Of a DNA stretch of 64,000 bases, positions 1 to 47,765 are shown piece by piece. The position numbers were made by a program, and so were the translations under genes. Position 1 is the stretch's first letter. Each line of letters opens with the position of its first letter. Under the pieces are notes generated by a model, which had not been told where the DNA came from, did not search any database, and worked only from the letters and a program-made list of their open reading frames with translations. The DNA is from Hydrolagus colliei (Eukaryota): NCBI GenBank assembly GCA_035084275.1, contig CM068745.1, positions 41,726,001 through 41,790,000 on the forward strand. Direction: 5' to 3'.

Positions 1-78
1 ATTATTACCTTTGAAATGCTTAAAATGACCCTGAAGTCAATTAATGTGAGGAGTCGAAGTAATAATGAACGTACTTAC

Positions 79-156
79 TTGGCAGCAGTTTTTTCTTGAC
101 TTTCCGTATCACTATTGCAAGTATCACAGCTACAGCTCCAGCTCCAGCAATTGATA
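79..156 (-). CDS. Transmembrane exon: (V)SIAGAGAVAVILAIVIRKVKKKLLP
   Basis: 78-nt phase 1-1 exon with acceptor tttcaattcaaaacag and donor CCAA|GTAAGT. It encodes a hydrophobic run followed by the basic stop-transfer RKVKKK. Confidence 0.9.
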
Positions 157-541
157 CTGTTTTGAATTGAAATAGATGATACAGTACATAAGGACAGGAT
201 AGTGTAACACATTACATATAGGATAGAGTAATATATAATATACAGAGCAATGATAAAGTAATAGATAATGCAGAGGCAACTGATAATGCATAGATACAGT
301 ATACAATAATAATTAATGATTGTAAATTGTATCTACTGTTTTTATTATTTACTAAATATGGGTGGGGATTGGAGGCTGTATTCACAGTGATAATTAGCTA
401 AATGTGGTAAAAGAATATATCTGCAATTTACTTTTAACATCAGGTTTGGAAACCCCATTCCCCACTTCTAGGGAATGGTTTGAGCCTCTCAAAATGGTTC
501 TCTTATAATATTGTATTATACAGTTTTTTTTTCCATGTTAC

Positions 542-610
542 CAACAAAAATGAAGGTATTTGTGTTAGGCATTAGAGTAACATATTTTAATTTCATTTTC
601 AATCTCAATT
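542..610 (-). CDS. Possible additional 69-nt juxtamembrane exon: (E)LRLKMKLKYVTLMPNTNTFIFV
   Basis: Phase 1-1 open frame ending in hydrophobic residues, donor TTG|GTAACA. The acceptor AG has a competing out-of-frame AG 8 nt upstream. Confidence 0.3.
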
Positions 611-1124
611 CTAAGACACTGTAAGAAATGTAAGTGTTTTATAGCCTTTCAATGTAATACACTAATTATCACCACATGCTAATTGTGGTCAATGAAAATT
701 ATTACAGATAGAGTCTGCATTGAATTGTGTGATGACTGAATGATGACTTTGGGCAGAACAGCTTTCCATCCAACTTTCAGAGTATATTTTTTATAGTCAG
801 CTGGTCATCTGCTTTTAAGTTTTTAAATGCAACATCAAGATTTAAATTTTAAACTCTTCAATTGCTAAGGTTTTATGGTTTGAGAAATAAATGCAATGGA
901 AAGGATTTGAAGAGTTAACAGTTCAATTCTTCAGTGTATATGTAACATGATTACTTAATATTGGTGTAAAATTTGCAGCATTCGTTATTCAATGTTGATG
1001 TAAACTATCAGAGGACAGGACTCAATTCAAACTAAACAGTTTCTTCCATTTCAGAATCTAATTTCAGATCTTTTGTGTTGCATTATTTTCTAGATTATTT
1101 GATCTACCAATGATGTCTGAAATC

Positions 1125-1340
1125 TAATAATAATCCTTGCATTTTGATATAGCGCTTTTCACGTCTTCTAGGCGTGTTTAAAATATTATCACCTGATAAG
1201 TAGGTTATTAAATATTTCACGTGAAGATGATTTGACGTGTCTTTGTCATCATCTATTGATTAAAAGGAAAGTTAATAATCAAAGTGCTTCACAGAATATA
1301 CTGGTAAAGTTAATTGACTATATTTGTTGGTGAAATCTGA
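1125..1340 (-). mobile_element. 3' fragment of the tRNA-Thr/Deu SINE, split by the 109-bp exon insertion
   Basis: SINE tail aataataatccttgca...cacgtcttctaggcgt runs to 1175 and resumes at about 1279 as tcaaagtgcttcacagaatatactg. Confidence 0.85.
1193..1252 (-). CDS. 60-nt juxtamembrane mini-exon, copy A (identical to B, embedded in a SINE)
   Basis: 1174-1282 is identical to 1702-1810 and includes both splice sites. Usage in transcripts is not shown. Confidence 0.6.
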
Positions 1341-1720
1341 TAAAATTAACCTTTTAATGTTCTAATGGGCTTGGCTGGAAACCCTCAAGCCCTTTGATAG
1401 TTGGCTGAGAAGAATGTGGATTCTTGTTCAAAACTAAACATCTAACAAAAACATTAATTTGAAGCAGCACTCTGTTTCCTTAGCGTTGTGCTATAAAATG
1501 CACAGAAAAATCATTCACCATGGATTTTTTTTAAATGCGTGATAAGGAGGCAACTGCTTGTTTGAAGAGATGGGCTGCCACCTCACAGGTGCCACAAATT
1601 TTACCTTCTAAATCATAAGGGGTAGACGTTAAGATGCATGATATAAATACATCAGAGTTGGTACAAAATACTTAGTGAACATTTAAATAATTTTAAAAAT
1701 TGTGTTTAAAATATTATCAC

Positions 1721-1780
1721 CTGATAAGTAGGTTATTAAATATTTCACGTGAAGATGATTTGACGTGTCTTTGTCATCAT
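1721..1780 (-). CDS. 60-nt juxtamembrane mini-exon, copy B: (D)DDKDTSNHLHVKYLITYLS
   Basis: Acceptor tttccttttaatcaatag, donor TCAG|GTGATA, phase 1-1. Its flanks are homologous to those of copy C, 265 bp away. Confidence 0.78.
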
Positions 1781-1985
1781 CTATTGATTAAAAGGAAAGT
1801 TAATAATCAACTACTGATTAAGTTCTTTTGAAAGCATTCTTGGGCACTACCCCAGTTGAAGGGCTTTATATAAATGCAAATTGTTGTTCCTCTAGATGTT
1901 CAGATTTCTTATGTTGGATGATTACAAGTGACTTAGTGAACATTTAAATCAGATAAAATTTTAATTTTATTTAAAATATTATCAC

Positions 1986-2045
1986 CTGAGAGGTAGGTTA
2001 TTAAAGGTGTCATATGAAGATGCTTCGATGTGTTTTTGTCATCAT
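1986..2045 (-). CDS. 60-nt juxtamembrane mini-exon, copy C: (D)DDKNTSKHLHMTPLITYLS
   Basis: Acceptor tttcttttcaatcaatag, donor TCAG|GTGATA, phase 1-1, open frame. Diverged paralog of copies A and B. Confidence 0.75.
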
Positions 2046-3037
2046 CTATTGATTGAAAAGAAAGTTAACAATAAACTATTTTTTAATGTTGAGTAGATTC
2101 TTAAGCAATTAACAACAAGTGTCAACTTGGCACAATCAGTATAACTCTTATCTCTAGTTCAGAAGATTGTGGGTCAGGTGATCATATCAGGTGTGGATCT
2201 TATAATCTGGGTTGACAGTGCAGTGCTGGGGAAAAGCTGCATTGATGGAGATGCACTCTTGACATTCGCCAAACCAAATTCCAGTTTACCAACCCTCAGC
2301 TAGATGCTGGAGATAGAGTGACACTATTTTTCTTCTTGTATACAAGCTTACAATTCACCAGAAAAATTAACCATTCACTCCTTGATTGTTAGTGGACGTT
2401 GTAGTCTGTAAAATTGGCTGTTTTATTTGCCTACTAAAACATAGTACAGTACTTTACTTAAACCAGGAATTACTGTTCCATAGAACCACAGATATCTACA
2501 ACACAGATATACTACAGCACAGTAGGGGGGGATTCAACAATGTATTCGTATTAGTTCCTTTGATAAATTCATCTTCTAATCCCAATGGTCTGCTCTTGCA
2601 TCCTCGAATATCATTCCTGTTTATCTGCTAATTTAATTATTTTAGAAATCCAATGAATTCTGCTCCAACATCTATCCCTGGTAAAGTATTCCAGACTCTA
2701 ATAACCCACACAGAACATTTAACGATTCTATTCATAAACTAAAACATGTTTTTAATGTGGACATGTACCCATACATATGAGAACCCTATATTCTAGTTTT
2801 AATATTCATAAGAGTGGTTTGTGGTTTTGCATGTGATAAGTACTCAGGTGTCCAAAAAATACATAAATTATCTTTTTTGTGATTCAATATTCCCCAGAAA
2901 GTGAAGAAAAGTGCAAATAGTCAATTGTATTATTAAAGGACAACTCTACTATGAATTTAAATATTGTAAACTTACACTTCTTACAACTGTTTAGAATTCA
3001 TTTGAAATGTTTTTACAAATAATTATATATTTTTTAC

Positions 3038-3376
3038 CTTGGATATCCAAATAGAATTTCTGCACTATTTTTCCTTCTGGAAAAGTGTGAACTTGGCAGG
3101 AATACCAGCCTCTGTCAGATTCTTGAGCTTCTTTAATAATAATGGTGACACTGTTATTGGTGACTTCCAGTGCTGCTCTTGACTTGTACGAAGAAGCAAG
3201 TGATTTGTTAAGTGATGGACTGTAGATTGCAATCATTGTGTTGTCATCGTCCTTATTCACTTGAAATTGTACTGGTGTGTTGGAAGCTTTAGCAGGAACT
3301 TCACATTTCAAGGCAGCTTCATAACCTTTCACTACTGTTACATTTATAACACCTGCAATCTGCTGTGTTTCAAAGC
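3038..3376 (-). CDS. IgV-set exon of a nectin/PVR-family receptor (TIGIT/CD226/CD96/CD200-like)
   Basis: 339-nt phase 1-1 exon with acceptor ttttctttcctttcaatatag and donor CAAG|GTAAAA. It encodes the B-strand Cys (LKCEV), the D-x-G-W-Y-S-C motif, the TFPEG motif and AIYSPSL (compare CD226 AIFSPTHG). The exact ortholog cannot be assigned without a search. Confidence 0.93.
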
Positions 3377-3619
3377 CTATATTGAAAGGAAAGAAAATGC
3401 AATTACCACAAAGAATCATATCAATGCTTCTTTATTAATCCTGGCTCAATTTGTAACACTAATCTATGTCACAATTCAAAAATAGAAGGGAGTTCCTTGG
3501 TTTGCCTGGCCAATAATCTCCCAAATAAAGTTCCTCACTCACTCCATAGCTGTTTCTGGGACAACTTGGCTGCTGTGTTTGCCTACAAAATACACACAGT
3601 CACACAAATTTACAGGATA

Positions 3620-3769
3620 TTCTGTAGACATTTATTTGGGGAGGACGGCTTTGTGCGGTTATGGGGAGAGAGCTGTGGGTGGGATTGAATTGCTCTTTTC
3701 AGAGAGCCGGCACAGACTCGATGGGCCAAATGGCCTCCTTTTGTGCCGTAAGATTCTATGATTCTATGA
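3620..3769 (+). mobile_element. CR1 3' UTR fragment; others near 13715-13803 (+), 14140-14281 (+), 21740-21845 (+), 22200-22410 (+), 50417-50560 (-), 57500-57570 (+)
   Basis: gagccggcacagac..gatgggcc.aatggcctcct..tgtgccgtaa.attctatgattctatg. Confidence 0.85.
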
Positions 3770-5264
3770 GGTGTATTGACAAAATGGTATGGTATTATAT
3801 CACTTGCACAAATTATTATACTATTGTTATTGATTTGAATTAAGGCTCTTTAGCCCAATTGATCTCTACTGTCCTCCTATTACAATATTAAACTACTTTT
3901 CAATTGAGTCCTGACTTCAAACACCTGTCTTAGCAACCCATTTCCAGTTATTAATTAAACATAAAGAAAAACATCCTGGTATCAATCTTGAAATTGCCTT
4001 TTGTAACTCTAAACCTATGTCCTATTTTACTTCTATCTTGATACATTCTAAAGTATTATCTTGGGTTCATTTTCTCAATCCTTTTTAATATATATATATG
4101 CATATATATATCTATAAGTTGAGTCATTTTCTTTCAAGGCTGAGGAACTCTAGCTATCTAATCATTGATCATACCTCATTCACCTCAAACCTCTTCCTTG
4201 CCCCTCCTTCTCCCTCTTCAGATCACACCTGAAAACCTTCTACTTGAACCTTGCCTATGGTCACCTCTCCTCTCCTGCTGGTTCAGGTTTGAGCTCCGCT
4301 ATTGTTAAGCGCTCTGGTATAAGACCCTCACTGCTGGGCACTATATAAATACAAGTTGTTGTTGTTCTTGCTGGCTCACATCATTTTGGCTTAGTAAGCG
4401 ACGAGTTAACTAATACCCTGAGATCTCTTGGTCGCTCTTGGCAAGTTCTATCCTATCCAAAGAGAATTTATACTTCCTTAAAATAGTCTATGATATAGGT
4501 CAGACAATACCTAAGCTTTATGAGCTCATGTCATCTGTCACAGACGCTGAATAAAGAAATTGTAATAGTGTCTCTAAATTAGCTCAATTATGTATAAAGT
4601 CAAATATTGTATTTCTGCTCCACTGTTTAAAATGTTTATGTTGCACCCTTGTACTTGCAGCAACCAAGTCAGCATCTGAGGCACTGGAGTTATTATTGGT
4701 GCAAAAAGGTGTTTCTTTGCATTTTCCGAATGTGCATAAACTTCTTCGCTACAGTAAACAATTTAGCAATGACTGTAAAGATTTGTTACATATTTTCCAA
4801 CTGCAGCTTTCAATAAACATCAGTTTCTGGTTTCAAAAGAGAAGTGAAGTGATACTTTACAGAGAGAAAAGGCTTTTTTAGCGATTTAGTTACAGTAGCA
4901 GTGAGGAGGAGGGTCTGTGCAATCCTTTGACTTGTGTTGAGCCTTCAATAATGTATGGATACAACAGGAAAGGGGCAGATTCATATCTAAATTGCTTCTA
5001 CACATCAGTTGGCATTATCATAGAAGTGTCTCTTTACCATAGAAGTGAGATCATGTTACTTTTACTCATTTCAAGAACTGTACTAATTAAATTATCAAAA
5101 CTGCATTTATTTTGCTCATCACATGTCGGACTTATGGGGAAGCCCATCATGATGATTAATCGTCTCCAGACCACACTGCTGACAATTCCACATATGTACA
5201 GTTTCCATTGGACTGGCATATTGCATACTCTCTCGTTCTTGCTTCTTTTGAAGATAATGTGTCT

Positions 5265-5586
5265 ATAATAATAATCCTTGCATGTGATATAGCGCTTTTC
5301 ACGTCTTCTAGACATCTCAAAGCACTTCACAGAATATACTGTAAAGTGAATTGACTGTATACTTGTGGGCGAAACGTGGCAGCCAATTGCGCACAGCAGT
5401 GTCCCACAACAGTCATGAATTGAAATAACCAATTTTATTATTGTTTTCTTTTGGAGGGATTATTATTAGGCATGTGGAGTAAAGAAACTTGCCCAAGGTT
5501 TCACTCTGACCTGCCTGGATTCGAACACATATTCGAATATATGTGTTGTAAGGCGAGTGCTCTAACCACTGAGCTACAGGACTCCA
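5265..5586 (-). mobile_element. tRNA-Thr(TGT)-headed Deu-domain SINE with L2-like tail
   Basis: Head TAGCTCAGTGGTTAGAGCACTCGCCTTAC..GTTCGAATCC, Deu-like core (c/t)GACTGTT..GGGACACTGCTGTGCGCAATTGGCTGCC, tail GTGAAAAGCGCTATATCA..TGCAAGG(ATT)n. Confidence 0.9.
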
Positions 5587-5687
5587 CAACCGAGTTAAGA
5601 CAATGTATTTACAGTATTTACGGACTCCTGTATTTAAGTACGGTAGTGCATTGGCTAAATTCTGACTTCTCTGAATGCTTCATTACT

Positions 5688-5980
5688 ACTAATAATAATC
5701 CTTGCATTTTGATATAGTGCTTTTTCACGTCTTCTAAACATCTCAAAGTGCTTTACAGAATATATTGTAAAGTGAATTGACTGTAAATTGCGCACAGCAG
5801 TGTCTCATAAACAGTCGTGGATTGAAATGACCAATTTTTTTAAAAAAATTTGGAAGGATTATTATTAGGTGTGTGGAGTAAGGAAACTTGCCCAAGGTTT
5901 TGCCCTGACCTGCTTGTATTCGAAACACAGGTCTCATGTTTGTAAGACGAGTGCTCTAACCACTGAGCTATAGAACTCCA
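5688..5980 (-). mobile_element. Same SINE family
   Basis: Head, core and tail present; small core deletion. Confidence 0.9.
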
Positions 5981-6290
5981 CTAATAGACTAAAATCTAGA
6001 CGCTAGGTGGAATTTTACTCCTAAAATAGCAAATACAATCCACGGAATTTTAAAACAACATTAAGGGAAAAAGCTTCTACACTCTTTACAAAACAGTTGG
6101 TGGACGTTCAAGAGCTTTCAGAGATGTGAAAAACTTGTGTACATTTTTTTTATCAAGAATGAAATATCTATTTCAGAATAAAATGTTCAAAACAAAGCAA
6201 TATTAATTCTACAAGTTATTATTTCATTCTGCAAAATGCCATTTTGATTTAAGTATTTGTCTTATAGAGTAATAGGAATCGTATACTTAC

Positions 6291-6348
6291 CAAGTCCAAA
6301 AAGAACATAAATATGAATGATCTTTAACATCTTAGGCATGGACACCAT
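6291..6348 (-). CDS. Leader (signal peptide) exon of IgV receptor gene: MVSMPKMLKIIHIYVLFGL(G)
   Basis: ATG at 6348, 19 codons plus 1 nt, then the consensus donor TTG|GTAAGT. Phase 1 matches the V-exon acceptor, and the hydrophobic core is typical of a leader. Confidence 0.85.
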
Positions 6349-6389
6349 ACAAAATCCTCTATTAAATCTGTTTTAATGAAAATGTGGGC

Positions 6390-6480
6390 GCCAACAATCA
6401 GATAAGCTGTGATATAGGCAACAGGAACTTGCTAGTGCAGTCAAAGCAAAACTATGATTTGACCGAGTTAGGGAAGTGGA
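6390..6480 (-). promoter_or_regulatory. Putative TATA-less proximal promoter of the IgV gene
   Basis: AGATAA (6400-6405), CAGGAA (6422-6427) and GGAAGT (6472-6477), i.e. GATA/ETS-like words, lie within 130 bp upstream of the ATG. Motif matches only. Confidence 0.3.
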
Positions 6481-6625
6481 TAACGCTGTGTGCAATACCT
6501 TCACGTCTTTATTACCGTACTGTAGATAGTTTTCTCGAGAAGTGTATGTGGGTGCAGACATTGTGAGACTATCTGTGGCTGATTAACGTAAGCAACAATG
6601 ATAATTTGGGCAACTTGAGGAACTG

Positions 6626-7027
6626 GTGGAATCTGTAGCTCAGTGGTTAGAGCACTTGCCTTGCAAGCGATAAAACCTCATTTTGTTCTTGTTCTTGTTT
6701 TGTTGTTGTTGATGTTCATTGATTCCTGGGCAGGGCAAAACGTTTGGCAAGTTTCCCAACTCCACACAGTTCTGTTCACCTAACGGTGAGGAGGAACCTG
6801 GTAGTTAGTCGATTGGTGGATCGCTTTTCCAGCTGTAATAATCCCTTTAAAAAACATAATCTGGTCACTCAATCCACGACTGTTTGTAGGACACAGCTGT
6901 GCACAATTGGCCACACAATTGGCCCACAGAATATACAGTCAACTCACTTTACAGTAGCTTCTGTGAAGCACTTTGAGATGTCTCAAAGATGTCATAAGGT
7001 CCTAAATGAAATGCAAGGATTATTATT
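6626..7027 (+). mobile_element. Same SINE family, long variant with extra ~65-bp internal segment
   Basis: Head at 6626, extra segment 6770-6834, tail at 7027. Confidence 0.85.
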
Positions 7028-7069
7028 CTAGGTGTGTTGTGTGAGTCGGAGGCCCACTTGATTGGCTCA

Positions 7070-7810
7070 CTCGTGACTTGGTAGCTCAGGCACTGGCAGC
7101 ATCAACTTCCATGGATGCATATTCAACCTCACCAAGCCAGTCAGGAACATAGGTGTCTTGTTCAATCCTCAACTGTCTTTTCTCCCACACATCCATGCCA
7201 TGACATGCTCGGCCTTCCCTCATCTCCACAACATTACCTTACTCTGCCACTATCTCACTCCTCAGGCTGCTGAAACTCTCATTCATGTCTTTATTATGTC
7301 TAGGGTTACATCAATATGCCAACATCCTGCTTGTTGGCCTCCCCAATTCCTCTCTTCATGGTCTGCAGATCATCTAGAACTCTTCAGTCTGTGTCCTCTC
7401 CTGCACCATGCTCCGCAATCCTATCACCATCTCCACTGGAAGATTCAACTCAGAAGATTCAATTAAAAATCCTGGTCCTCCACCTTTAAAACCCTCCATG
7501 GCATAGCCACACTTACTCCTGCAACGTCCTCACCCACCCTACCAACTTGTCCTCTCCCTCTGCTCAGCGGGCTCCAGCCTGCTCCATGTCCCCCAACCCA
7601 CCTGCACCACTATCACAAGCATTCAGCCACTCGGCCCCCAATCTCTGGCATTCCATCCTGTAATCCCTCCACCTCACCCCCTCCCTAACCTCCTTTAAGT
7701 CCCGTCACGATCCTCCTCTTTGACCATGTCATCGGTCATACCCCTGGCCCGCCCTTCCCTTCAACCTCCCTGATCCCGACCCCAGCTCAGATCTGAAACA
7801 CTGACTGTCC
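7070..7810 (+). mobile_element. L2 3' fragment
   Basis: LSFLPHI..FPHLHNI..LTPQAAETLIHVF, then the 3' UTR. Confidence 0.85.
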
Positions 7811-9869
7811 AGGATCTTGAGGTGGACTGGGTGGGGGAGGGGTACAAGGTGGAGGAGGAGAATAAAGTTCCTCCTGGTGTTCTGGCCAATAATCCCCAAA
7901 TAAAATTGATCATTCACTTCCTGACTGCGTGTGGGATGGGGATCTGCAAAAAATGTAGTCACTAACCTTTACAGTATATCTTGTGAAGCACTTTAAGGCA
8001 TCCTCCCGATATGAAAGGCAATAAGTCGAATATAAGGACTAACATTATCAATACGAAAGCTGATTAAATAGCTTTAACGAAGAGTTGATTGAGAAGATAT
8101 GACAGATTCAAAGAGTACATTCTTGTCATTGCTGTCCTCCCCACAGATTAGCAAAACACTACCCTGCCCCAAACCATCTACTTTACCACACTTACAGTAC
8201 ATTCATTGTGAAATTGCATTCTTAATTTACCTGAACCCTCCAACTAAAAAGTTAAGTGTTATCACCTGAGACAAGCTGTTAATGAGATATGTGACAATTT
8301 AGTGGATGTCAGGAAGAATAAATTATGCTTCAACTGTAAAGGATTAAAGATTGTTATCAGGAAGAAACACTGCCTGGATATTTTATTGTCAACTGCCGGT
8401 TAGTTTTCATCTGCCCAGTAGTGATCTACAGCAGTTGCAATATGCTAGGTAGAAACTACAATGTTTATTAACCACAGTTTCCTGTTTTCTGAGGTACTTA
8501 CCGGTTATCTCATCAACCTCATAATTCAGTGCTTAGAGAAGTTATAGAGAAGTATAGTATATGACATGAATGCAGTTGTTTTTGTTGAAATTACAGCAAG
8601 TATAAATTATGCCGTATCTGTTGAAACATGTTTGGGAATAATGGTAGCAACATTTAGATGAAAGTAACAAACAGGCAAGTGCAAACAAGAATAAAATAAA
8701 TATAAAATAAGATATCATCCATATTACTGACTGAATTAATATTGTGTATCATTTACAATGCTTGTTCATTATGAATCGTGTTTATTATAAAATGGAAATA
8801 ACAATAACTTTTTTCAAAATGTTAATGTAAGCAATCAGAGCTTCATTAATAATGTCAAAATTATATGGAACTGATTTAATGGTACATTTTTTGAAGTACT
8901 GTCAAAATAAAGGCTTGGAAATAGAACAAAGGCTGTTGAATCTTTGCTGAAATACAGAATGATCCATGACTGACACTGAAGTGGCACTTGTGTGTTCAGT
9001 AAGTAATTTTACTTTTTGGTTGCTAGTGGAGATTCAGAAAATGAATGAATATAGATAGATTCTGCCAAGCAACGTAAAGCAATCTGATATTCATAACACT
9101 GAGGCTTGAAGCAATGACATTCAGTCAGACTTTCTTGCCTGAAAATGCTATTTGCAGCCACAGATATCAGGGTGAAATTTGCAATTGGATGTGCAAAAAA
9201 CAGAACTTGCATTTAATGCACCAAATACAGTTTGTAAATTTAGCATTTTGAACTTTTTGTGGGGACAGTGGATTAAAATACAGTAGCCTTAATTTTTTCT
9301 GCCCATATTCAGCCACTACTTCCTGAAACTCAGGAGTACTATTCCTCTATCCCTCCCACTTGCCCCTGTCTTCAGATCATGCCTGGATTCAACCCCTTCG
9401 CTATATAAATGCAAGATGTTGTTGTTGAAGACCTTCCTCTTAGACTGTGCCTTCTGCTGGAAGAAGTATTGTTGTCACCTTACTTCTGTTGGGTTCTTTG
9501 ATAAATCATTCTCACTCTTCAATCATCATGAGACTGAATGGTACTATGTCACTTGTTTTTAATAAGCACGTGCAAGAAACTCTTAGTAGCGATTGAACAG
9601 TTGAAGACACCCTGTTGTAAACAGATCATATCCTTATAGACAGTTTTATAACAGGTTATTCCATGGTGGAAAGACAGTGATCTCATTGTTATATCTAGCT
9701 CGGTTATGTCACAATTAACGATTTTATTGAAGGTCAGCAGTTAGCCACAAAAGCTTTAATGACAATCAATTACTAATCTATTCTCAAGTTGTGTAATTGC
9801 ACGTAATTTGCAGATATATTGGCAGTCCCCTATAATTTCCCCAAATGTCCAAAATGAACATCCAATCTG

Positions 9870-10110
9870 AGGCAGGTCAAGGAAGACAAAGGATAAAAAG
9901 TGGTAGATGACAGGCGATGATGGGTTAAAGAGGTGTTAATCGTGCAAAATGTTTGCTCTGTCTCCCCCTCCTCTCCGTTAGTCCTTAAACACCTCTCCTT
10001 CCCAGCATGTCACAGTTCTTTCTCCATAGATGCTGCTTGACCTGCTGAATGTTCCCAGCAATTTCTGTTTTTGTTTCAGATTTCCAGCATCTGCAGTATT
10101 TTGTGTTTTG
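9870..10110 (+). mobile_element. Probable Penelope-like pLTR relic
   Basis: ttctttctccatagatgctgcttgacctgctga..ccagcaatttctgtttttgtttcagatttccagcatctgcag resembles a chondrichthyan PLE-associated repeat (recalled, not searched). The hammerhead core is absent. Confidence 0.5.
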
Positions 10111-10269
10111 TCTCAGAAGAAGAGCTGCCTTACAAGAAATAGTTAGATATTGACATTGTCAATAAGACATTGTTGCTGGAGCATGACTTAGTTTATTAAT
10201 GCAGTTTGGAAGTGTAAACATGGGTGTCTTCTTAACCTTATAAGCCAAATAAGGTTGTAGAATCCAAAT

Positions 10270-10660
10270 TCACCTTCAAAGCCCTCCATGGTCTTGTTCT
10301 CCACCACCTCTCCAACTTCCTAACCTATATCAGCCTGTCCACACCCTCTGCTCGGCAAATACCAGCCTGATTCATGTCCCCCACACTTCCTAACGTAACA
10401 TTGGTGGTTGGGCATTCACCATCTCTGCTCCGCACTTTGGAAATCTATCCCACAATCCCTCCACCTCATTCCCTTTCTTGCCTCCTTCAAGTCCAGTCTG
10501 AAGACCTTCCTCTTCGACCATGTCTTGGCCACCCTTTCACCCCCACCCATGCTGCCCTCCTCCCCTTCTGACCCCAACTCACAGCTTGGGTCTAAAGTCC
10601 CCTGACTGTCCAGCACCCCAGAATGTCTTACCAATGTGAAGGGCGCGATATACATATAAT
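10270..10660 (+). mobile_element. L2 3' fragment
   Basis: ttcaaagccctccatgg...gaccttcctcttcgacc...gtgaagggcgcgatata. Confidence 0.8.
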
Positions 10661-11375
10661 TATAATGAGTTACAAATTACTGGAGCTTTTTTTATGGTGC
10701 AGTTGATTTTTAGACCCCAACCCAGGATACTGTACTATATCTAATCAGGTTGATCTGTGTTCTCCAGAGGCCTCTTTATTCATGAAGCAAACTGTTTTGT
10801 AATGTATACCAGGTTGGTAGAAACACAGCTAAAATGAGGCTGTTTTTGTAGGATTTTTGAGACACACACATAATCTGCAGAGACAGGTGCTTAAGACCAC
10901 AGAAAATATTACAATATTACACCGATTTTTAAAAGATAAAAGTACCTAATTTAGAGTGACATTTTTGTTAAGTACAGATCCAAATGCAATCTATTAAATG
11001 TTAATTTACAGATAGGCTCGACTACAATGGAATATCTGTGCATGCATCAAACTCTAAATCATTTATTACTGCATGAGTCATTAATTATTTCTACAGTTGG
11101 ACCCTGAAATAGAGATCTCCAGCCAGAATATGTTAAGTTCTTTAGTTCAAGGAACACATTTTTTTTACACACATATGTTACTTTCTGTACCATCAGTTGA
11201 CAACATTTTATTTTCCTCTAATTTGTATAACCAGACAAGCATTACCACATTAGTGAAGAATCAATTAATAGTTCCTGCATCTGAGTCCTTACAATCCTCA
11301 GAACTACTTGTGTTACTGGCTCTGCACAATCATAGTCCTCTCACTATTATTAAACATTGCAATGCTCAGAGTATA

Positions 11376-18220: not shown

Positions 18221-18988
18221 GGATATCATATGAATAGAAAAAAATCAATTGTGGAATTTTACAGCATAGAAGAAAGCCATTCACTCCATCATCCAACATA
18301 CCTTTCAGAGACAGAACCACTTTAGATGAAATCAGGGCTGCAGTTAGACAAAGCCGGGGAGAATCATAATACACAAAGGAACTTCCAATAAGTCTACACT
18401 ATCTGATACACTGTGCCATATGAAGGTCGCTATATAATTGTAAGTTGTTGTTGTTGTTGTTGAATAAGTGTCTTGAAGATACATCTTCTGTGTCTGATAC
18501 CTTCATTCAGGCTCCGAGCTTCAAAGTGCTTCATTTCCCATTTTTTTGTTTTCGTTGGTACATTTGTCTGAATGCTAAATTATACAGTTTGCATAGTAGT
18601 AATGATTCAAACATAAATCCACACAGTTTCATTTCTCTCTGGCCTCTGTTGTGTTTTATAAACAGTGAAGTATTTTAAATTAGGCTGAAAAACTGGAAGT
18701 ATGGCAGTAAAATTGCAATAATATGCATCTTTTTTACTGGTCTAGCAAAAACAAATTTAATCCCTAACACCTCTTTAAATTCAGTCTTGTACATACAGAA
18801 TTAATATTGAAGTGTTATAGGCCCTTAGAGCTATTCATTTTAAAAGTAGTGTACCCTTTGTTAAATTTATTCAGGGTACATTCTACTTCAGATAAACAGT
18901 TATGTTCTACAAGACCCTTAAGGCTGATTTTTTAGCAGGGCACTATGTTATGCACACACAGAACTTCTAGAAATGACTCCCCTTTATG

Positions 18989-19868: not shown

Positions 19869-20017
19869 ATTTTTCCTTCTTCCCTAATTTCTTTCTGAGC
19901 AGTGATTATTTTAACTCTCTTTTTCTATTAATGTTACCTTTAACATTTTTCCTTCTTCCCTAATTTCTTTCTGAGCAGTGATTATTTTAACTCTCTTTTT
20001 CTATTAATGTTACCTTT
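19869..20017. repeat. 76-bp period tandem duplication (two perfect copies over 73 bp)
   Basis: atttttccttcttccctaat...atgttaccttt starts at 19869 and again at 19945. Confidence 0.95.
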
Positions 20018-38995: not shown

Positions 38996-39729
38996 CAGGT
39001 ACCCCGCCTCAACCGTGTTTTTTTCTACCATTAATTTCACTTATCCACGGTTGGCTCGCTGCGATAAACCTTGCTAACCATGGCAATGGTTATTGCTTAA
39101 CCCATGCTTATCCACAGGTTTTAACACTAACACTAGTGTTTGGCGCTAGGACCCAGTTGCATCAACCAGTTTCGCACTAGCGTCTGGCGCTAGGACCCAG
39201 TTGCGATGTCTCAATTAACCAGCGAGATGTCGCTTCTCTCTTAGGATTAAGGTAAATCTCCATTGATTTCTCTCTCTCTCTGCATCTGTGCATCTCTGTG
39301 TCTGCAGATCCTTGCAGCCAATGCTCCCAAACTTAGCCTCCCTATCCCCATGTCACCACAACACCTTCTCCACATCCCCCCACCTCTGTGTCACCCACCA
39401 CACCACCTTATGCACATCCCACCACACCCTCCGTGTCACCCACCACAACACCTTCTCCATTGATTTATCTCTATCTCTGTCTGTGTGTATGTAGATCAGT
39501 CAGTCAGACAGCGTCGCGGATTGCTGCAGATCCTGGCAGCCAATGCTCCCAAACTTACCCCCCCTATCCCCATGTTTCCCATAGAGCCCTGCATTTTCCA
39601 ACCATGAAAAAGCAAATATACTCTCCCTATCCCCATGTTTCCCATAAGGCCCTGTATTTTCCAACCTTGGTTTTACCAACTGCGAAGGTTTTCAGGAATG
39701 TATCCCCCGCGGTTGGGGAGGGACACCTG
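38996..39729. mobile_element. Tigger/pogo-like MITE with internal tandem repeats
   Basis: TA flanks; TIRs CAGGTACCCCGCCTCAACCG / CAGGTGTCCCTCCCCAACCG. Confidence 0.85.
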
Positions 39730-43074: not shown

Positions 43075-45140
43075 AACAACAACAACAACTTAAACTTATA
43101 AAGCGCCTTTCACGTCGGGAGGATGTCCCAAGGCGCTGCACAGGAGGCGTGTGACCCGAGCTGGGAGGGGAGTATTCGGGAAGGGGTGAAACACGTAGGG
43201 GAGGTTGAAAAGTTCGGTGGGGAACAAAAGGCACGGTCGAAGAGGAAAGTTTTCAAACCGGCCTTGAAAGAGGAAAGGGAGGAAACAAGGCAGAGGGATT
43301 GGGGGATGGAATTCCATAGGGTGGGAGCAGAGAAACTGAAGGCCCGGCCTCCGATGGTGGGGCGGTTCGAGCGGGGGCTTGGAGCAGGCCAAGTTAAATA
43401 GGGTGGGGCAAGGCCGTGTAAGGCCTTGAAGGTGAGGACGAGGATCTTGAACTCGATCCTATGGAGGATGGGGAGCCCGTGGAGACGGGCGAGGGTGGGG
43501 GTTATGTGGTCGCGGAGGTGGGTGTGGGATAGTACACGGGCTGTAGAGTTTTGGATGACCTGCAGCCTGTGAATGGAGGAGCTGGGGAGGCCGACGAGGA
43601 GAGAGTTTCCGTAGTCCAGCCGGGAGGTGATGTATGCGTGCACGAGTGTTTCGGCAGCGTGGGGGGTGAGATAGCTGCGGAGCCTGGCAATGTTGCGCAG
43701 GTGGAAATAAGAGGTGCCGGTCAAGGCACGGATGTGGGGGAGGAAGAGAGTTTATGGTCGAACGTGATGCCGAGGTTGCTGACTGGCTTTGTGAGGTGGA
43801 GAGTACAGCCTTGGATGTTGAGGCTGGCAGGGCCTGATGTGTGGAGGCGCTGGCTTGAGCCAATCAGGAGGGCCTCGGTTTTGCTCACGTTGAATTGGAG
43901 GAAGTTGTCCCTCGTCCAGGACTCAATGTCGGACAGACATGCTCTCAGAACATCGATGGTCTGGGGGTTGAGGGATAAGGTGGAAAGGTACAGTTGGGTG
44001 TCGTCCGCATACATGTGGAAATTTACCCCATGTTTGCGGATGACATCCCCCAGAGGGAGCGTGTAAATGGTGAAAAGGAGGGGGCCAAGGACAGAGCCCT
44101 GGGGGACGCCATGAGAAACTGTGCGGGGGTTTGAGGAGAAACCTTTGGAAAATACAAAATGTAGGCGGTGGGTCAGGTAGGAATGGAACCAGTCAAGTAC
44201 TGTGCCTTGAAGGTTGAGGTGGGAGGAAAGACGTTGGATCACAAAGACGTTGTGATCGACTGTGTCGAACGCAGCAGACAGGTCAAGGAGGATGAGGAGG
44301 CAGAGGGAGCCCTGGTCGCAGGCGGTTAGGATGTTGTTTGTAACCTTAACCAGGGCAGTTTCTGTGCTGTGAGCAGGGCGGAAACCTGATTGGAGGGGTT
44401 CAAGGAGTGAGTGAGTTGAGAGGAAAGAGCAGAGCTGGGAGGCAACCACTCTTTCAAGGACCTTAGATAAAAACAGGAGGTTGGAGATGGGTCGGTAGTT
44501 TGATGGCTGCGACGCATCAAGGGAGGGTTTTTTCAGGATAGGGGTGATGGTGGCTATTTTAAGGGAGGTAGGGATGGTGCCTGAGGAGAGGGAAATGTTG
44601 ATGGTGTCAGAAATGAGCGGGGCCAAAAGGTGGAGCTGGGTGCGGAGGAGGGTGGTGGGGATGGGGTCCAGTAAACACGTGGTGGGTTTCATGGAGGTGA
44701 TTATTTTTGTGACTGAAGACGGGGAGGTGGGGATGAAAGTATGAAAGGTGGGGTGGGTGGGGGTTGAAATAACGGATGGAGGGGCGGAGGTGGAGGAGAG
44801 GTGGGGGGAGGAAACCGCAGAGCGGATTCTCTCTATTTTTGACTCGAGGAAGTCCAACATCTCCTCGCAACGTGCGTTTGAGGAGAGGATCTGCGAAGCG
44901 AGACGGGGGTGGGGGCGGAGGAGCTGATTGGTGGTGGCGAAGAGGAGGCGGTGGTTGTCCTTCACTTCCAGGATTATCTTGGAGTAGAAGGCTGATTTGG
45001 CGGTGGCTAGGGCGGAGCAGTAAAATTTGATGCGGTCCAGCCAGATTTGGCGGTGGACCGTAAGGCCAGATTTGAGCCAGGTGCGTTCAACTGCTCTCAC
45101 TTGGCTTTTGAGGGAATGGAGGTGGGTTGTGTACCACGGT
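43075..45140 (-). mobile_element. 5'-truncated L2-clade LINE, relatively young, with RT domain
   Basis: 459-aa open frame (45100-43721) with PQGSVLGP and HMYADDTQLY motifs, a frameshift near 43722 into the ORF2 C-terminus (FHLRNIARLR..TSRLDYGNSLL), then the 3' UTR and (TTG)n tail. The endonuclease region is absent. Confidence 0.95.
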
Positions 45141-45589: not shown

Positions 45590-46150
45590 TCCCTACCTCC
45601 CCCTCTCCTTCTCTCCCTCCTCTCCTTCTCTCCCTCCTTTCCCCCTCTCCTTCTCTCCCTCTCCCTCCTCCCTGTCTCCTCTCCCTCCTTTCCCCCTCTC
45701 CTTCTCTCCCTCCCTCCCTCCCCTCTCTCCTTCTNNNNNNNNNNNNNNNNNNNNNNNNNNNNNNNNNNNNNNNNNNNNNNNNNNNNNNNNNNNNNNNNNN
45801 NNNNNNNNNNNNNNNNNNNNNNNNNNNNNNNNNNNNNNNNNNNNNNNNNNNNNNNNNNNNNNNNTCTCTCCTTCTGTCCCTCCCTCCCTCCCTCCCCTTC
45901 TCTCCCTCCTTTCCCCCTCTCCTTCTCTCCCTCATTTCCTTCTCTCCCTCCTTTCCCCTCGCTCCTTCTCTCCCTCCTTTCCCCCTCTCCTTCTTTCCCT
46001 CCCTCCCTCTCCTCTCTTCCTCTCTCCTTCTCTCCCTCCTTTCCCCTCGCTCCTTCTCTCCCTCCTTTCACCCTCTCCTTCTCTCCCTCCCTCTTCTCTC
46101 TTCCTCTCTCCTTCTCTCCCAACTTTCCCCCTCTCCTTCTCTCCCTCCAT
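45590..46150. repeat. Polypyrimidine/polypurine minisatellite (CTCCCTCCTTTCCCCCTCTCCTTCT-like units) with 130-N gap at 45735-45864
   Basis: Direct inspection of the sequence. Confidence 0.95.
45735..45864. other. Assembly gap (130 N)
   Basis: Run of n in the sequence. Confidence 1.
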
Positions 46151-46469
46151 CTCTAAACACAAAATAGAACACACACACACCAAAAACAAAATCTAGAGAT
46201 TTATTCTCCTCCATTTCTTGCTTGAAAGTAGCATGTAATGTCCACGTGTAAATGAGATCTATTACAATAGAAAAGAGAGAGACAGACAGTCTGACTGTCA
46301 GAGTTAGAAGCCAGATTATCACTGCTGTGTGTGTCTGACTAGACACACACATAGAGGCAGTGATAGTTTGGCTTCTAACTCTCTCACACACAAAAATAAC
46401 ACTTACAGCCACAAAATGCCACTTATTTTTATGTAGTCTGAAGTCTGAATTAATGTCCTTCGCCATTGG

Positions 46470-46811
46470 CAAGCTTTCCTTTGCTATGCAAAAAGTGACA
46501 GCGTTCGTGATACTTTGCCACTTTTTGTCCCCTCTCTGGTACAATGTTCTCCTCTTAAATAAAGCAGGAATTGTTTGAGCTGCACTGGCCCCACTACCTG
46601 TCGCTTTCTCCGAAGCGCTGGTTCGACTTCGTTCTGTTGTCGACAATGATTTCGCTCTGAGGGCAGCGTGCTGGGCGGGGTGGTGCTGCTTAATGTGTTG
46701 TCGCAGGTTGCTCGTGCTCGAATCAGATGTCTTAACCAAGACCTTGCAAACTGTACATCTATACACACCATTACTGACTGCATTGTTTTCAAAGTAGTCC
46801 CATACTACCAT
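46470..46811 (-). pseudogene. Truncated hAT transposase N-terminus (BED zinc finger)
   Basis: MVVWDYF..YRCTVCK..SSTSNLRQHIKQHH (W-x-x-F, CxxC, HxxxH), then ITNAVTFCIAKESLP. Homology stops before the DDE domain and the frame runs on into repeats to 46068. Confidence 0.88.
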
Positions 46812-47765
46812 TCTTTTCCCTATGATGAGAAAGGTCAATTTTCAAACTACAATTTTCAGCGATGCGACTTTGTTAAGACGCCACGACTCACGTCGAGTAT
46901 ACACAGTAAAGTGTGCGCGCGCATCGGATGTGGGCGCCCGTTAATTGTGCGCGCGCACCGAATGTACGCGCATTCCATGCTCTAGATCTAGGAGGTTGCA
47001 ATGCCGGCGACAAGGTAAGCTGGAAAAGATCGCATTACACTGATAATACCAACAATATTGATATATTGCCAGGAACGATATTAAAAATATATCGATGTAT
47101 ATTTTTAAAATCGAATCTCTCGATATAACAGTTTTTTTAGAATCACCATATCGGCACACCGATCTGAAAATCATATCGGGTTTAATCGAAAAACCGATTA
47201 ATCGCCGTTCCCTACTGTAAAGCATGTAACACAGGTTTTAGTTTTTTTTCTGTGTATGTTCCTTTCGTGTACTATGGCTGATTTCATTTGCCTGCAGTGA
47301 TGTAAAAGAAGTTGGTAGACAAAAGCTCTTTGGCAAAGTAGAATCCAAGAGGTTTGTTTAGAAACTGGTGTCATTTAGTAATAAAAATAAGAGATAGACA
47401 GATTGGTAACTAGCTAAAACAAAGAAAGCAAAGGGATTTGATTGGGGTGCTGGAACAAAATTGGAGGAGGTATTAAATGTGTGGTGCCTTAAGAGTTAAT
47501 GCTACTCCTCGTATCCTTTAAATACCTTGATTCGCATACTCGGTATAAGGCAGTTGGGTAATTTTGCAGGTGGCAGCAACCGTATAACTGTATAAACAAT
47601 ATAAACTCCATATGACTAGTTGGGGTGAGTGAGGCCTGTTTCTGTGCTGTATATATCTTTTCAACAAAACTGAATCCATCTTGTTCAGCTCTCATCTACG
47701 CTCTCTTGCCTCTTTCTTCAACCTCCCCAGCTGCTTACTCTATCTAATAACGCATAAACTTGGTA

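Follow-up and report, generated by a model that had tools for sequence, protein, structure and literature searches.

A second copy of a stalk exon within a SINE: a probable repair-mediated duplication in a putative TIGIT/CD226-like receptor gene of a chimaera

How can a gene obtain a further copy of one of its own exons inside a transposable element, and can such a copy serve as an exon again? This question is raised by a locus in the window analysed here, i.e. the whole 64-kb stretch of chimaera DNA, in which pairwise alignment found positions 1174-1282 to be identical to positions 1702-1810 at 109 of 109 nucleotides. The first segment, called copy A in the following, lies in a SINE, and the second, copy B, comprises a stalk exon of the host gene. 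A third match to the same block, copy C (1967-2075), agrees at 92 of the 109 positions.

The host gene and its older stalk exons

The block belongs to what is, judged by homology, probably a chimaera TIGIT/CD226-like receptor gene on the minus strand, in which the exons are arranged in the order signal, IgV, stalk C, stalk B, copy A and transmembrane (TM). A conceptual protein assembled from the IgV, C, B and TM exons was used as query and matched three proteins, all of them from the elephant shark Callorhinchus milii, with LOC103184848 (P0001) as the best hit (E = 1.9e-68); a protein identical to that of the window's gene was not found in the database searched. The closest solved relatives of the homologue P0001 are CD226 (3.3e-07) and TIGIT (1.4e-06). 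The IgV exon (3038-3376, minus strand, 339 nt, phase 1-1) sits in an open reading frame at 3419-2991 of the minus strand and encodes an immunoglobulin V-set domain according to Pfam (E = 5.8e-10). The host gene carries a TFP motif (HTFPEG), which may be a hint of kinship with TIGIT/CD226 receptors. The TM exon (79-156, minus strand, 78 nt, phase 1-1) reads VSIAGAGAVAVILAIVIRKVKKKLLP. Phase 1 is shared by the end of the IgV exon and the beginning of the TM exon, whose frames are thus compatible with 60-nt phase 1-1 stalk exons. A probable signal-peptide exon was located at 6292-6345 (minus strand) by tblastn with residues 1-18 of P0001 (83% identity). This exon reads VSMPKMLKIIHIYVLFGL, where C. 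milii has MSMLKML..., that is, the first Met is replaced, and translation therefore probably begins at an ATG located two codons later.

The stalk exons are each 60 nt long, of phase 1-1 and located on the minus strand: exon C at 1986-2045 (DDKNTSKHLHMTPLITYLS), the older paralogue of B, exon B at 1721-1780 and the exon of copy A at 1193-1252. All of them have AG and GT boundaries and are open in the phase-1 frame only; exons A and B, identical in translation and splice-site context, read DDKDTSNHLHVKYLITYLS in this frame. The homology between B and C reaches past the 109-nt block (1662-1821 versus 1923-2086, approximately 160 nt) with a period of approximately 262 nt and an identity of 78-84%.

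The comparison with C. milii permits a relative dating of these exons. The genomic locus of P0001 (L001) is collinear with positions 1-11000 of the window, on the minus strand and introns included; the identity amounts to 73-84% in the introns and rises to 88% and 94% in the IgV and TM exons, respectively. The window locus may be the orthologue of L001 in another chimaera or a C. milii paralogue. L001 contains two stalk-exon copies, L1 being collinear with C (82%) and L2 with B (79%). The L2 exon (18274-18330) encodes residues 132-150 of the RefSeq protein P0001 exactly, which means that exon B has an annotated counterpart. Since the two copies in L001 are collinear with C and B, the B/C duplication is older than the divergence of the window locus from that of C. 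milii, and the gene already possessed both stalk exons by then. The use of these exons seems to be variable. P0001 carries one stalk repeat, DDKDIWNHLHMTSLITYLS, and in a second C. milii model, P0002, the IgV exon is joined directly to the TM exon, both stalk exons being skipped. L1 (L001 17993-18099) is intact, with an open frame and AG/GT boundaries, and occurs in neither annotated protein model. Because the intact L1 is absent from both models and P0002 skips both exons, the C. milii stalk exons look like optional cassettes.

Some minor observations belong to this part of the gene. A preliminary description of the window had named an additional acceptor at position 610, where an open 69-nt phase 1-1 stretch exists; this acceptor is unsupported, because the homologous C. 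milii model joins the stalk exon straight to the TM exon. A short repeat between B and C (1857-1888), considered as a sign that the older B/C duplication might likewise have landed in a transposon, is a 30-40-nt tail fragment that is also found in C. milii and thus uninformative. Furthermore, five substitutions are clustered within approximately 10 nt at 1741-1752 of exon B and 1213-1224 of exon A, which read CACGTGAAATAT versus CATATGACA(T/C)CT in C, L1 and L2. The cluster, which may be a multi-nucleotide mutation, turns H-M-T-S/P into H-V-K-Y and pre-dates copy A.

The duplicated block and the interrupted SINE

On the minus strand, the 109-nt block consists of 30 nt of acceptor-side intron (1282-1253), the 60-nt exon (1252-1193) and 19 nt of donor-side intron (1192-1174). 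The identity between A and B ends sharply on both sides, with c versus t at 1173/1701 and a versus c at 1283/1811. Both copies have the same orientation, are offset by 528 bases and leave a gap of 419 bp between them. They represent the sole non-transposon duplicate of at least 100 nt and at least 93% identity within the 64 kb, and exon-unit copies other than A, B and C were not found in the window. Chance is excluded as the source of the A/B pair.

To judge from its surroundings, copy B (1702-1810, minus strand) is the donor in its ancestral position, and copy A (1174-1282, minus strand) is the derived copy. This polarity is based on the flanks of B, which are homologous to C beyond the 109 nt, and on the position of B, which is collinear with L001 18245-18350 and sits where L2 sits in that locus. 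Moreover, it follows from the fact that the C. milii locus has both old stalk exons without the SINE and copy A.

The flanks of copy A, when joined to each other (1126-1173 plus 1283-1330), give an unbroken alignment to approximately 20 SINE 3' regions in the window, and they are continuous in 28 SINE copies once two C. milii loci (L001 and L002) are included. Hence, the 3' part of a 5'-truncated tRNA-derived SINE can be assigned to 1126-1175 (minus strand), with the tail ...AAGGATTATTATT in SINE sense; it has matches among the SINE copies of the window, of L001 and of L002 and is missing from the C. milii locus. The 5' part (1279-1330, minus strand) is continuous with 1126-1175 in the family alignment, with one base missing. 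Without the insert, the SINE would read ...CTTCTAGGCGTCTCAAAGTGC.... Compared to the family consensus, the fragment shows 7 differences in 96 positions, or approximately 4% when a 2-nt indel near the 5' end is discounted. An insert-bearing SINE subfamily, or any other copy with the insert, was not found in the window, L001 and L002.

The SINE itself is flanked by a target-site duplication, TGAAATCT, at 1118-1125 and 1331-1338, which was recognised by pairwise alignment with the empty site in L001; the first 6 nt of the second copy also match the SINE consensus at the truncation point. L001 lacks the entire segment 1126-1330, and its empty site reads ...TTTTATC/GGATTTCAGAC..., the slash marking the position of the SINE. 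Thus, a SINE of approximately 100 nt, 5'-truncated and tRNA-derived, was retroposed in sense orientation between exon B and the TM exon with a target-site duplication of at most 8 bp. This retroposition is of the ordinary type and later than the divergence of the window locus and the C. milii locus, and SINE insertions common to the window and L001 were not found within the 11 kb of collinear sequence. As a side observation, the motif TGAAAT (within 1324-1338) is common to the 5' truncation point and the target site, i.e. it represents microhomology at the 5' junction of the truncated retroposition. Full-length copies of the family (e.g. 5587-5266, minus strand) begin with a tRNA-like head containing A-box-like and B-box-like motifs; despite these visible motifs, ARAGORN called no tRNA on the SINE heads. 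Two full-length SINEs, at 5266-5587 and 5689-5981, lie head to tail with starts approximately 400 nt apart, and the block intervening there is absent from the collinear C. milii locus.

The junctions of copy A can be read base by base against the 28 SINE copies. The family consensus at the insertion site is CTTCTAGACGT-C-TCAAAG, and the window reads CTTCTAGGC-GT-(103 nt)-TCAA-AGTGC. The bases GT (1174-1175) and TCAA (1279-1282) are assignable to the SINE or to the donor, being at the same time the first two and the last four bases of the block shared with B. The unambiguous insert therefore comprises the 103 nt from 1176 to 1278, the rest of the 109 nt being bases common to the SINE. Exactly one SINE base is lost, where the pre-insertion sequence is taken from the family consensus and not from an orthologous copy. 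When the junctions at 1174 and 1282 were read directly, no target-site duplication, poly(A), A/T tract or filler was found around the insert. A microhomology of at least 2 nt at one junction plus at least 4 nt at the other was seen in 0.7% of the donor/target pairs picked at random from the window, and a total of at least 6 nt in 1.4%; the 2 nt on the left are unremarkable when taken alone (P approximately 0.2).

Finally, the age of the insertion can be bounded. Zero differences in 109 positions correspond to a pairwise A-B divergence below 2.7% at 95%, to be compared with 14-19% mismatches between the introns of the window and L001. An age equal to that of the SINE would predict 4-15 A-B differences for copy A, and 0 were observed (P from 0.013 down to <1e-6). 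Copy A must hence have arisen later than the SINE, provided that the identity of A and B is not maintained by gene conversion.

The preliminary description had already given the 109/109 block with its 30 nt of intron, 60-nt phase 1-1 exon and 19 nt of intron, and all of these coordinates were reproduced here. It had also named B as the source, which is now backed by the B-C flank homology and the collinearity of B and C with the C. milii locus, and had recognised that the block interrupts a SINE, in agreement with the family tails running continuous across the joined flanks. Likewise, the donor microhomology which it reported, GT on the left and TCAA on the right, holds, and its loss of about 1 nt of SINE becomes exactly one base missing relative to the consensus. 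Its dating as very recent and possibly polymorphic should be read with more reserve: copy A is young, but the divergence of less than 2.7% is only a bound and need not mean polymorphism. In humans, 10 species-specific duplications of a comparable kind, four of them with identical donor and acceptor, were genotyped and one was found to be polymorphic (Pace et al., 2009; PMC2671141).

Possible routes to copy A

We consider it probable that copy A is a repair-mediated duplication, i.e. a microhomology-guided templated insertion during the repair of a double-strand break. Several observations point to such a repair event: the sharply delimited 109/109 identity, the continuity of the SINE, the microhomology, the lack of a target-site duplication and of poly(A), a donor that is near and in the same sense, and the age gap. 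In particular, microhomology at both junctions, together with the loss of 1 nt and the lack of a target-site duplication and of poly(A), is what microhomology-guided templated repair leaves behind, which supports the mechanism already proposed in the preliminary description. There the route had also been separated from unequal crossover and SINE exonisation; the junction signature agrees with this separation and is unlike retroposition as well.

The event may have proceeded as follows. A break would have occurred in the SINE near ...CTAGGCGT/C/TCAAAG..., and one 3' end would have paired via 2-4 nt with the region of exon B, which lies at a distance of approximately 0.5 kb and could have been that of the same chromatid or of its sister. 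From there, 103 nt would have been copied by a polymerase, namely 19 nt of intron, the 60-nt exon and approximately 26-30 nt of intron. Once released, the new strand would have used the other microhomology to anneal to the second end of the break, and one SINE base pair would have been lost. The structure and the order of events are visible in the alignments; the break, the priming end and the enzymes are what we infer. Either end may have primed the synthesis, and the sequence would fit synthesis-dependent strand annealing as well as polymerase-theta-type end joining. Inserts of polymerase-theta end joining are short, and 103 nt is probably longer than its typical templated inserts. According to van Schendel et al. 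(2015; PMC4490562), this pathway operates in germ cells and is a source of natural indels; in it, minimal pairing primes synthesis from sequence near the break and the copy is joined to the other end, which resembles the case of copy A, but its events are small deletions of approximately 7-13 bp with occasional inserts. Copy A, in contrast, is an insert of 103 nt with a loss of 1 nt, and the phenomenon, although related, is mostly of shorter range.

Duplications of this kind have been described before. Pace, Sen, Batzer and Feschotte (2009) searched genomes for transposable elements interrupted by a copy of unique sequence and reported 824 human proximal "repair-mediated duplications" whose donors lay no more than 5 kb away; their length was 147 bp in the median and reached 619 bp (PMC2671141). 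All 39 proximal cases inspected were without poly(A) and showed microhomologies of 2-9 nt, deletions of 1-15 nt and/or filler, "microhomology + deletion" being among the commonest junction classes (PMC2671141). Repair-mediated duplication was also found in mouse, dog, cow, chicken and zebrafish (PMC2671141); copy A belongs to Holocephali, a lineage beyond that survey. In every testable respect, copy A agrees with this class. A transposable element is interrupted whose consensus is continuous across the site, with one SINE base missing. The insert of 103-109 nt exceeds 50 bp, its 103 unambiguous nt fall within the length range of the class, and the donor is 419 bp away (more than 50 bp and less than 5 kb), where the parental copy was judged within the 64 kb; the sole related locus found, C. 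milii L001, pre-dates the SINE itself. Neither poly(A)/T nor a target-site duplication surrounds the insert, since the TGAAATCT duplication belongs to the SINE, and the junctions consist of GT (2) plus TCAA (4) with a 1-nt deletion and without filler (p approximately 0.007-0.014). The similarity thus extends to an acceptor inside a transposable element, a unique donor less than 5 kb away on the same chromosome, a size of approximately 100-150 bp, "microhomology + deletion" junctions and the lack of poly(A). The differences concern details: copy A is in sense, lies in its own gene, preserves the frame, extends an array of two stalk exons and shows full identity with its donor to this day. Only two of the 824 human cases comprised complete exons together with flanking intron sequence, one of them antisense and neither with evidence of coding constraint (PMC2671141). 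The novelty of the route that the preliminary description implied was hence too high, because the route, whole exons included, has already been described (PMC2671141). Copy A reveals neither a new mechanism nor a new question.

Replication-fork template switching (FoSTeS/MMBIR) is a possible alternative, to which we give clearly less weight than to break repair. According to this explanation, a fork stalled or collapsed in the SINE would have switched to the region of exon B, copied 103 nt and switched back. Such a fork is predicted to leave the same signature: each of the two switches would be marked by microhomology, the template would come from close by, and the target would lose next to nothing. 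Templated insertions tied to MMBIR have reportedly been documented (PMC8421209). Break repair and fork switching would therefore give the same product and would be inseparable on this evidence. However, nothing in the sequence favours the switching fork, as there is neither an inversion nor a second template or a larger change in copy number, and such switching is usually invoked for larger or complex rearrangements, whereas copy A is a single simple insertion. Moreover, synthesis-dependent strand annealing was the explanation given for a large collection of comparable events in the germline (PMC2671141).

It appears unlikely that copy A is an old insertion made by the same mechanism and that A and B were held identical by gene conversion, in which case the event would be neither recent nor polymorphic. 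The two copies are only 419 bp apart in the same orientation, and zero differences fit homogenisation as well as youth. Nevertheless, B and C, which are closer together and homologous over approximately 160 nt, are now only 78-84% identical, and each tracks its C. milii counterpart (C-L1 82%, B-L2 79%), which argues that gene conversion is not frequent here. In addition, 109 nt is a short substrate for gene conversion. It is marginally less likely still that copy A is an artefact of assembly or polishing and absent from the animal. Such an artefact would be in line with the zero divergence between A and B, and a look-up via the IgV open reading frame found no independent contig. But assembly errors usually merge exact repeats or produce large false duplications where contigs are joined, which is unlike 103 nt set into a SINE that resumes at the next base but one, with microhomology at both ends. 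Furthermore, there is no N run within approximately 44 kb, the only one of the window being at 45735-45864.

A switch of the reverse transcriptase during SINE integration is very improbable. Here, the LINE enzyme would have jumped from the SINE RNA to nascent unspliced host pre-mRNA and back again, which would agree with the common orientation of SINE, gene and copy A and with an insert of unspliced gene sequence, the form in which nascent pre-mRNA would be present there. This scenario requires a return to the SINE RNA one base from the departure point, and it makes A as old as the SINE, against 0 differences between A and B where 4-15 would be expected.

The remaining candidates can be dismissed. 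Helitron or DNA-transposon capture would leave terminal repeats, TC...CTRR ends or a target-site duplication, and none of these was seen; for LINE-mediated retroposition of a gene fragment, neither a 3' poly(A)/LINE tail nor a target-site duplication exists at 1174 or 1282. Repeated exons that preserve the frame can also be produced in tandem by unequal crossover or slippage, and the older B/C pair looks like this kind, but A is not in tandem: the 419 nt between A and B (1283-1701) are not duplicated and SINE sequence stands on both sides of A. SINE/Alu exonisation likewise produces a potential new exon within an intronic SINE; in copy A, however, the exon and both splice sites are derived from the gene and the SINE was merely the landing site.

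Copy A as a candidate exon

The exon of copy A follows B at a distance of 468 nt and precedes the TM exon by 1036 nt, in sense and in frame. The copied block holds the AG acceptor, the GT donor, a polypyrimidine tract and a TTAAC branch-point candidate approximately 20 nt upstream of the AG. All positions scored by standard splice-site models (-20..+3 and -3..+6) are inside the copied block, so the core signals of A equal those of B. By its identity with B alone, copy A would be splice-competent; the birth of an exon, as announced in the preliminary description, is to be taken as a possibility. If it is spliced in, 20 residues (DDDKDTSNHLHVKYLITYLS) are added to the stalk. The predicted junction between exons B and A, ...CCTACTTATCAG/ATGATGACAAAGACACG..., arises only when both identical exons are included, and the junction between C and B reads ...CCTACCTCTCAG/ATGATG....

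We regard it as a tentative, rather doubtful proposition that copy A is indeed spliced into mRNA, giving rise to an isoform or allele of the TIGIT/CD226-like receptor with a three-repeat stalk that is possibly still segregating. If true, a coding exon would have been caught just as it was born, by a route that is repair-mediated and not tandem. A protein with three stalk repeats was not found in a search of 5.8 billion sequences. In C. milii, the homologue of B occurs in a RefSeq model and the homologue of C does not, and one isoform skips both; this apparently optional use of the homologous exons argues for caution regarding copy A as an exon. Moreover, the exons of B and C are identical at 49 of 60 positions and the adjoining splice-site flanks at 43 of 49, and because the exon is less conserved than its flanks, there is no sign of strong constraint on the peptide.

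The locus represents an unusually clean natural case, in which an old exon pair, then a SINE with its target-site duplication and then the templated insert can be followed in order. If the break-repair origin is correct, it would show that break repair is able to return a complete, in-frame, sense and splice-competent exon to its own gene. Since whole exons were involved in only the two human events mentioned above, neither of them shown to code, a case with zero divergence permits a direct test of recognition by the spliceosome. It is also a hazard for annotation, as two identical exons at a spacing of 528 bp mislead both the mapping of reads and the gene models.

Other repeats in the window should be mentioned as well. 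A perfect 73-nt tandem duplication is present at 19869-19941 and 19945-20017 (100% identity, 3 nt apart), which is very recent and of the tandem type. A 52-nt direct repeat with 94% identity is located at 39302-39353 and 39524-39575, 222 nt apart, in the region of a Pro/Thr-rich ORF. Finally, a LINE reverse-transcriptase ORF (43721-45100, minus strand; RVT_1, E = 6e-33) and a BED-zinc-finger ORF (46068-46838, minus strand) flank a GA/CT-rich low-complexity stretch, which holds the N run at 45735-45864.
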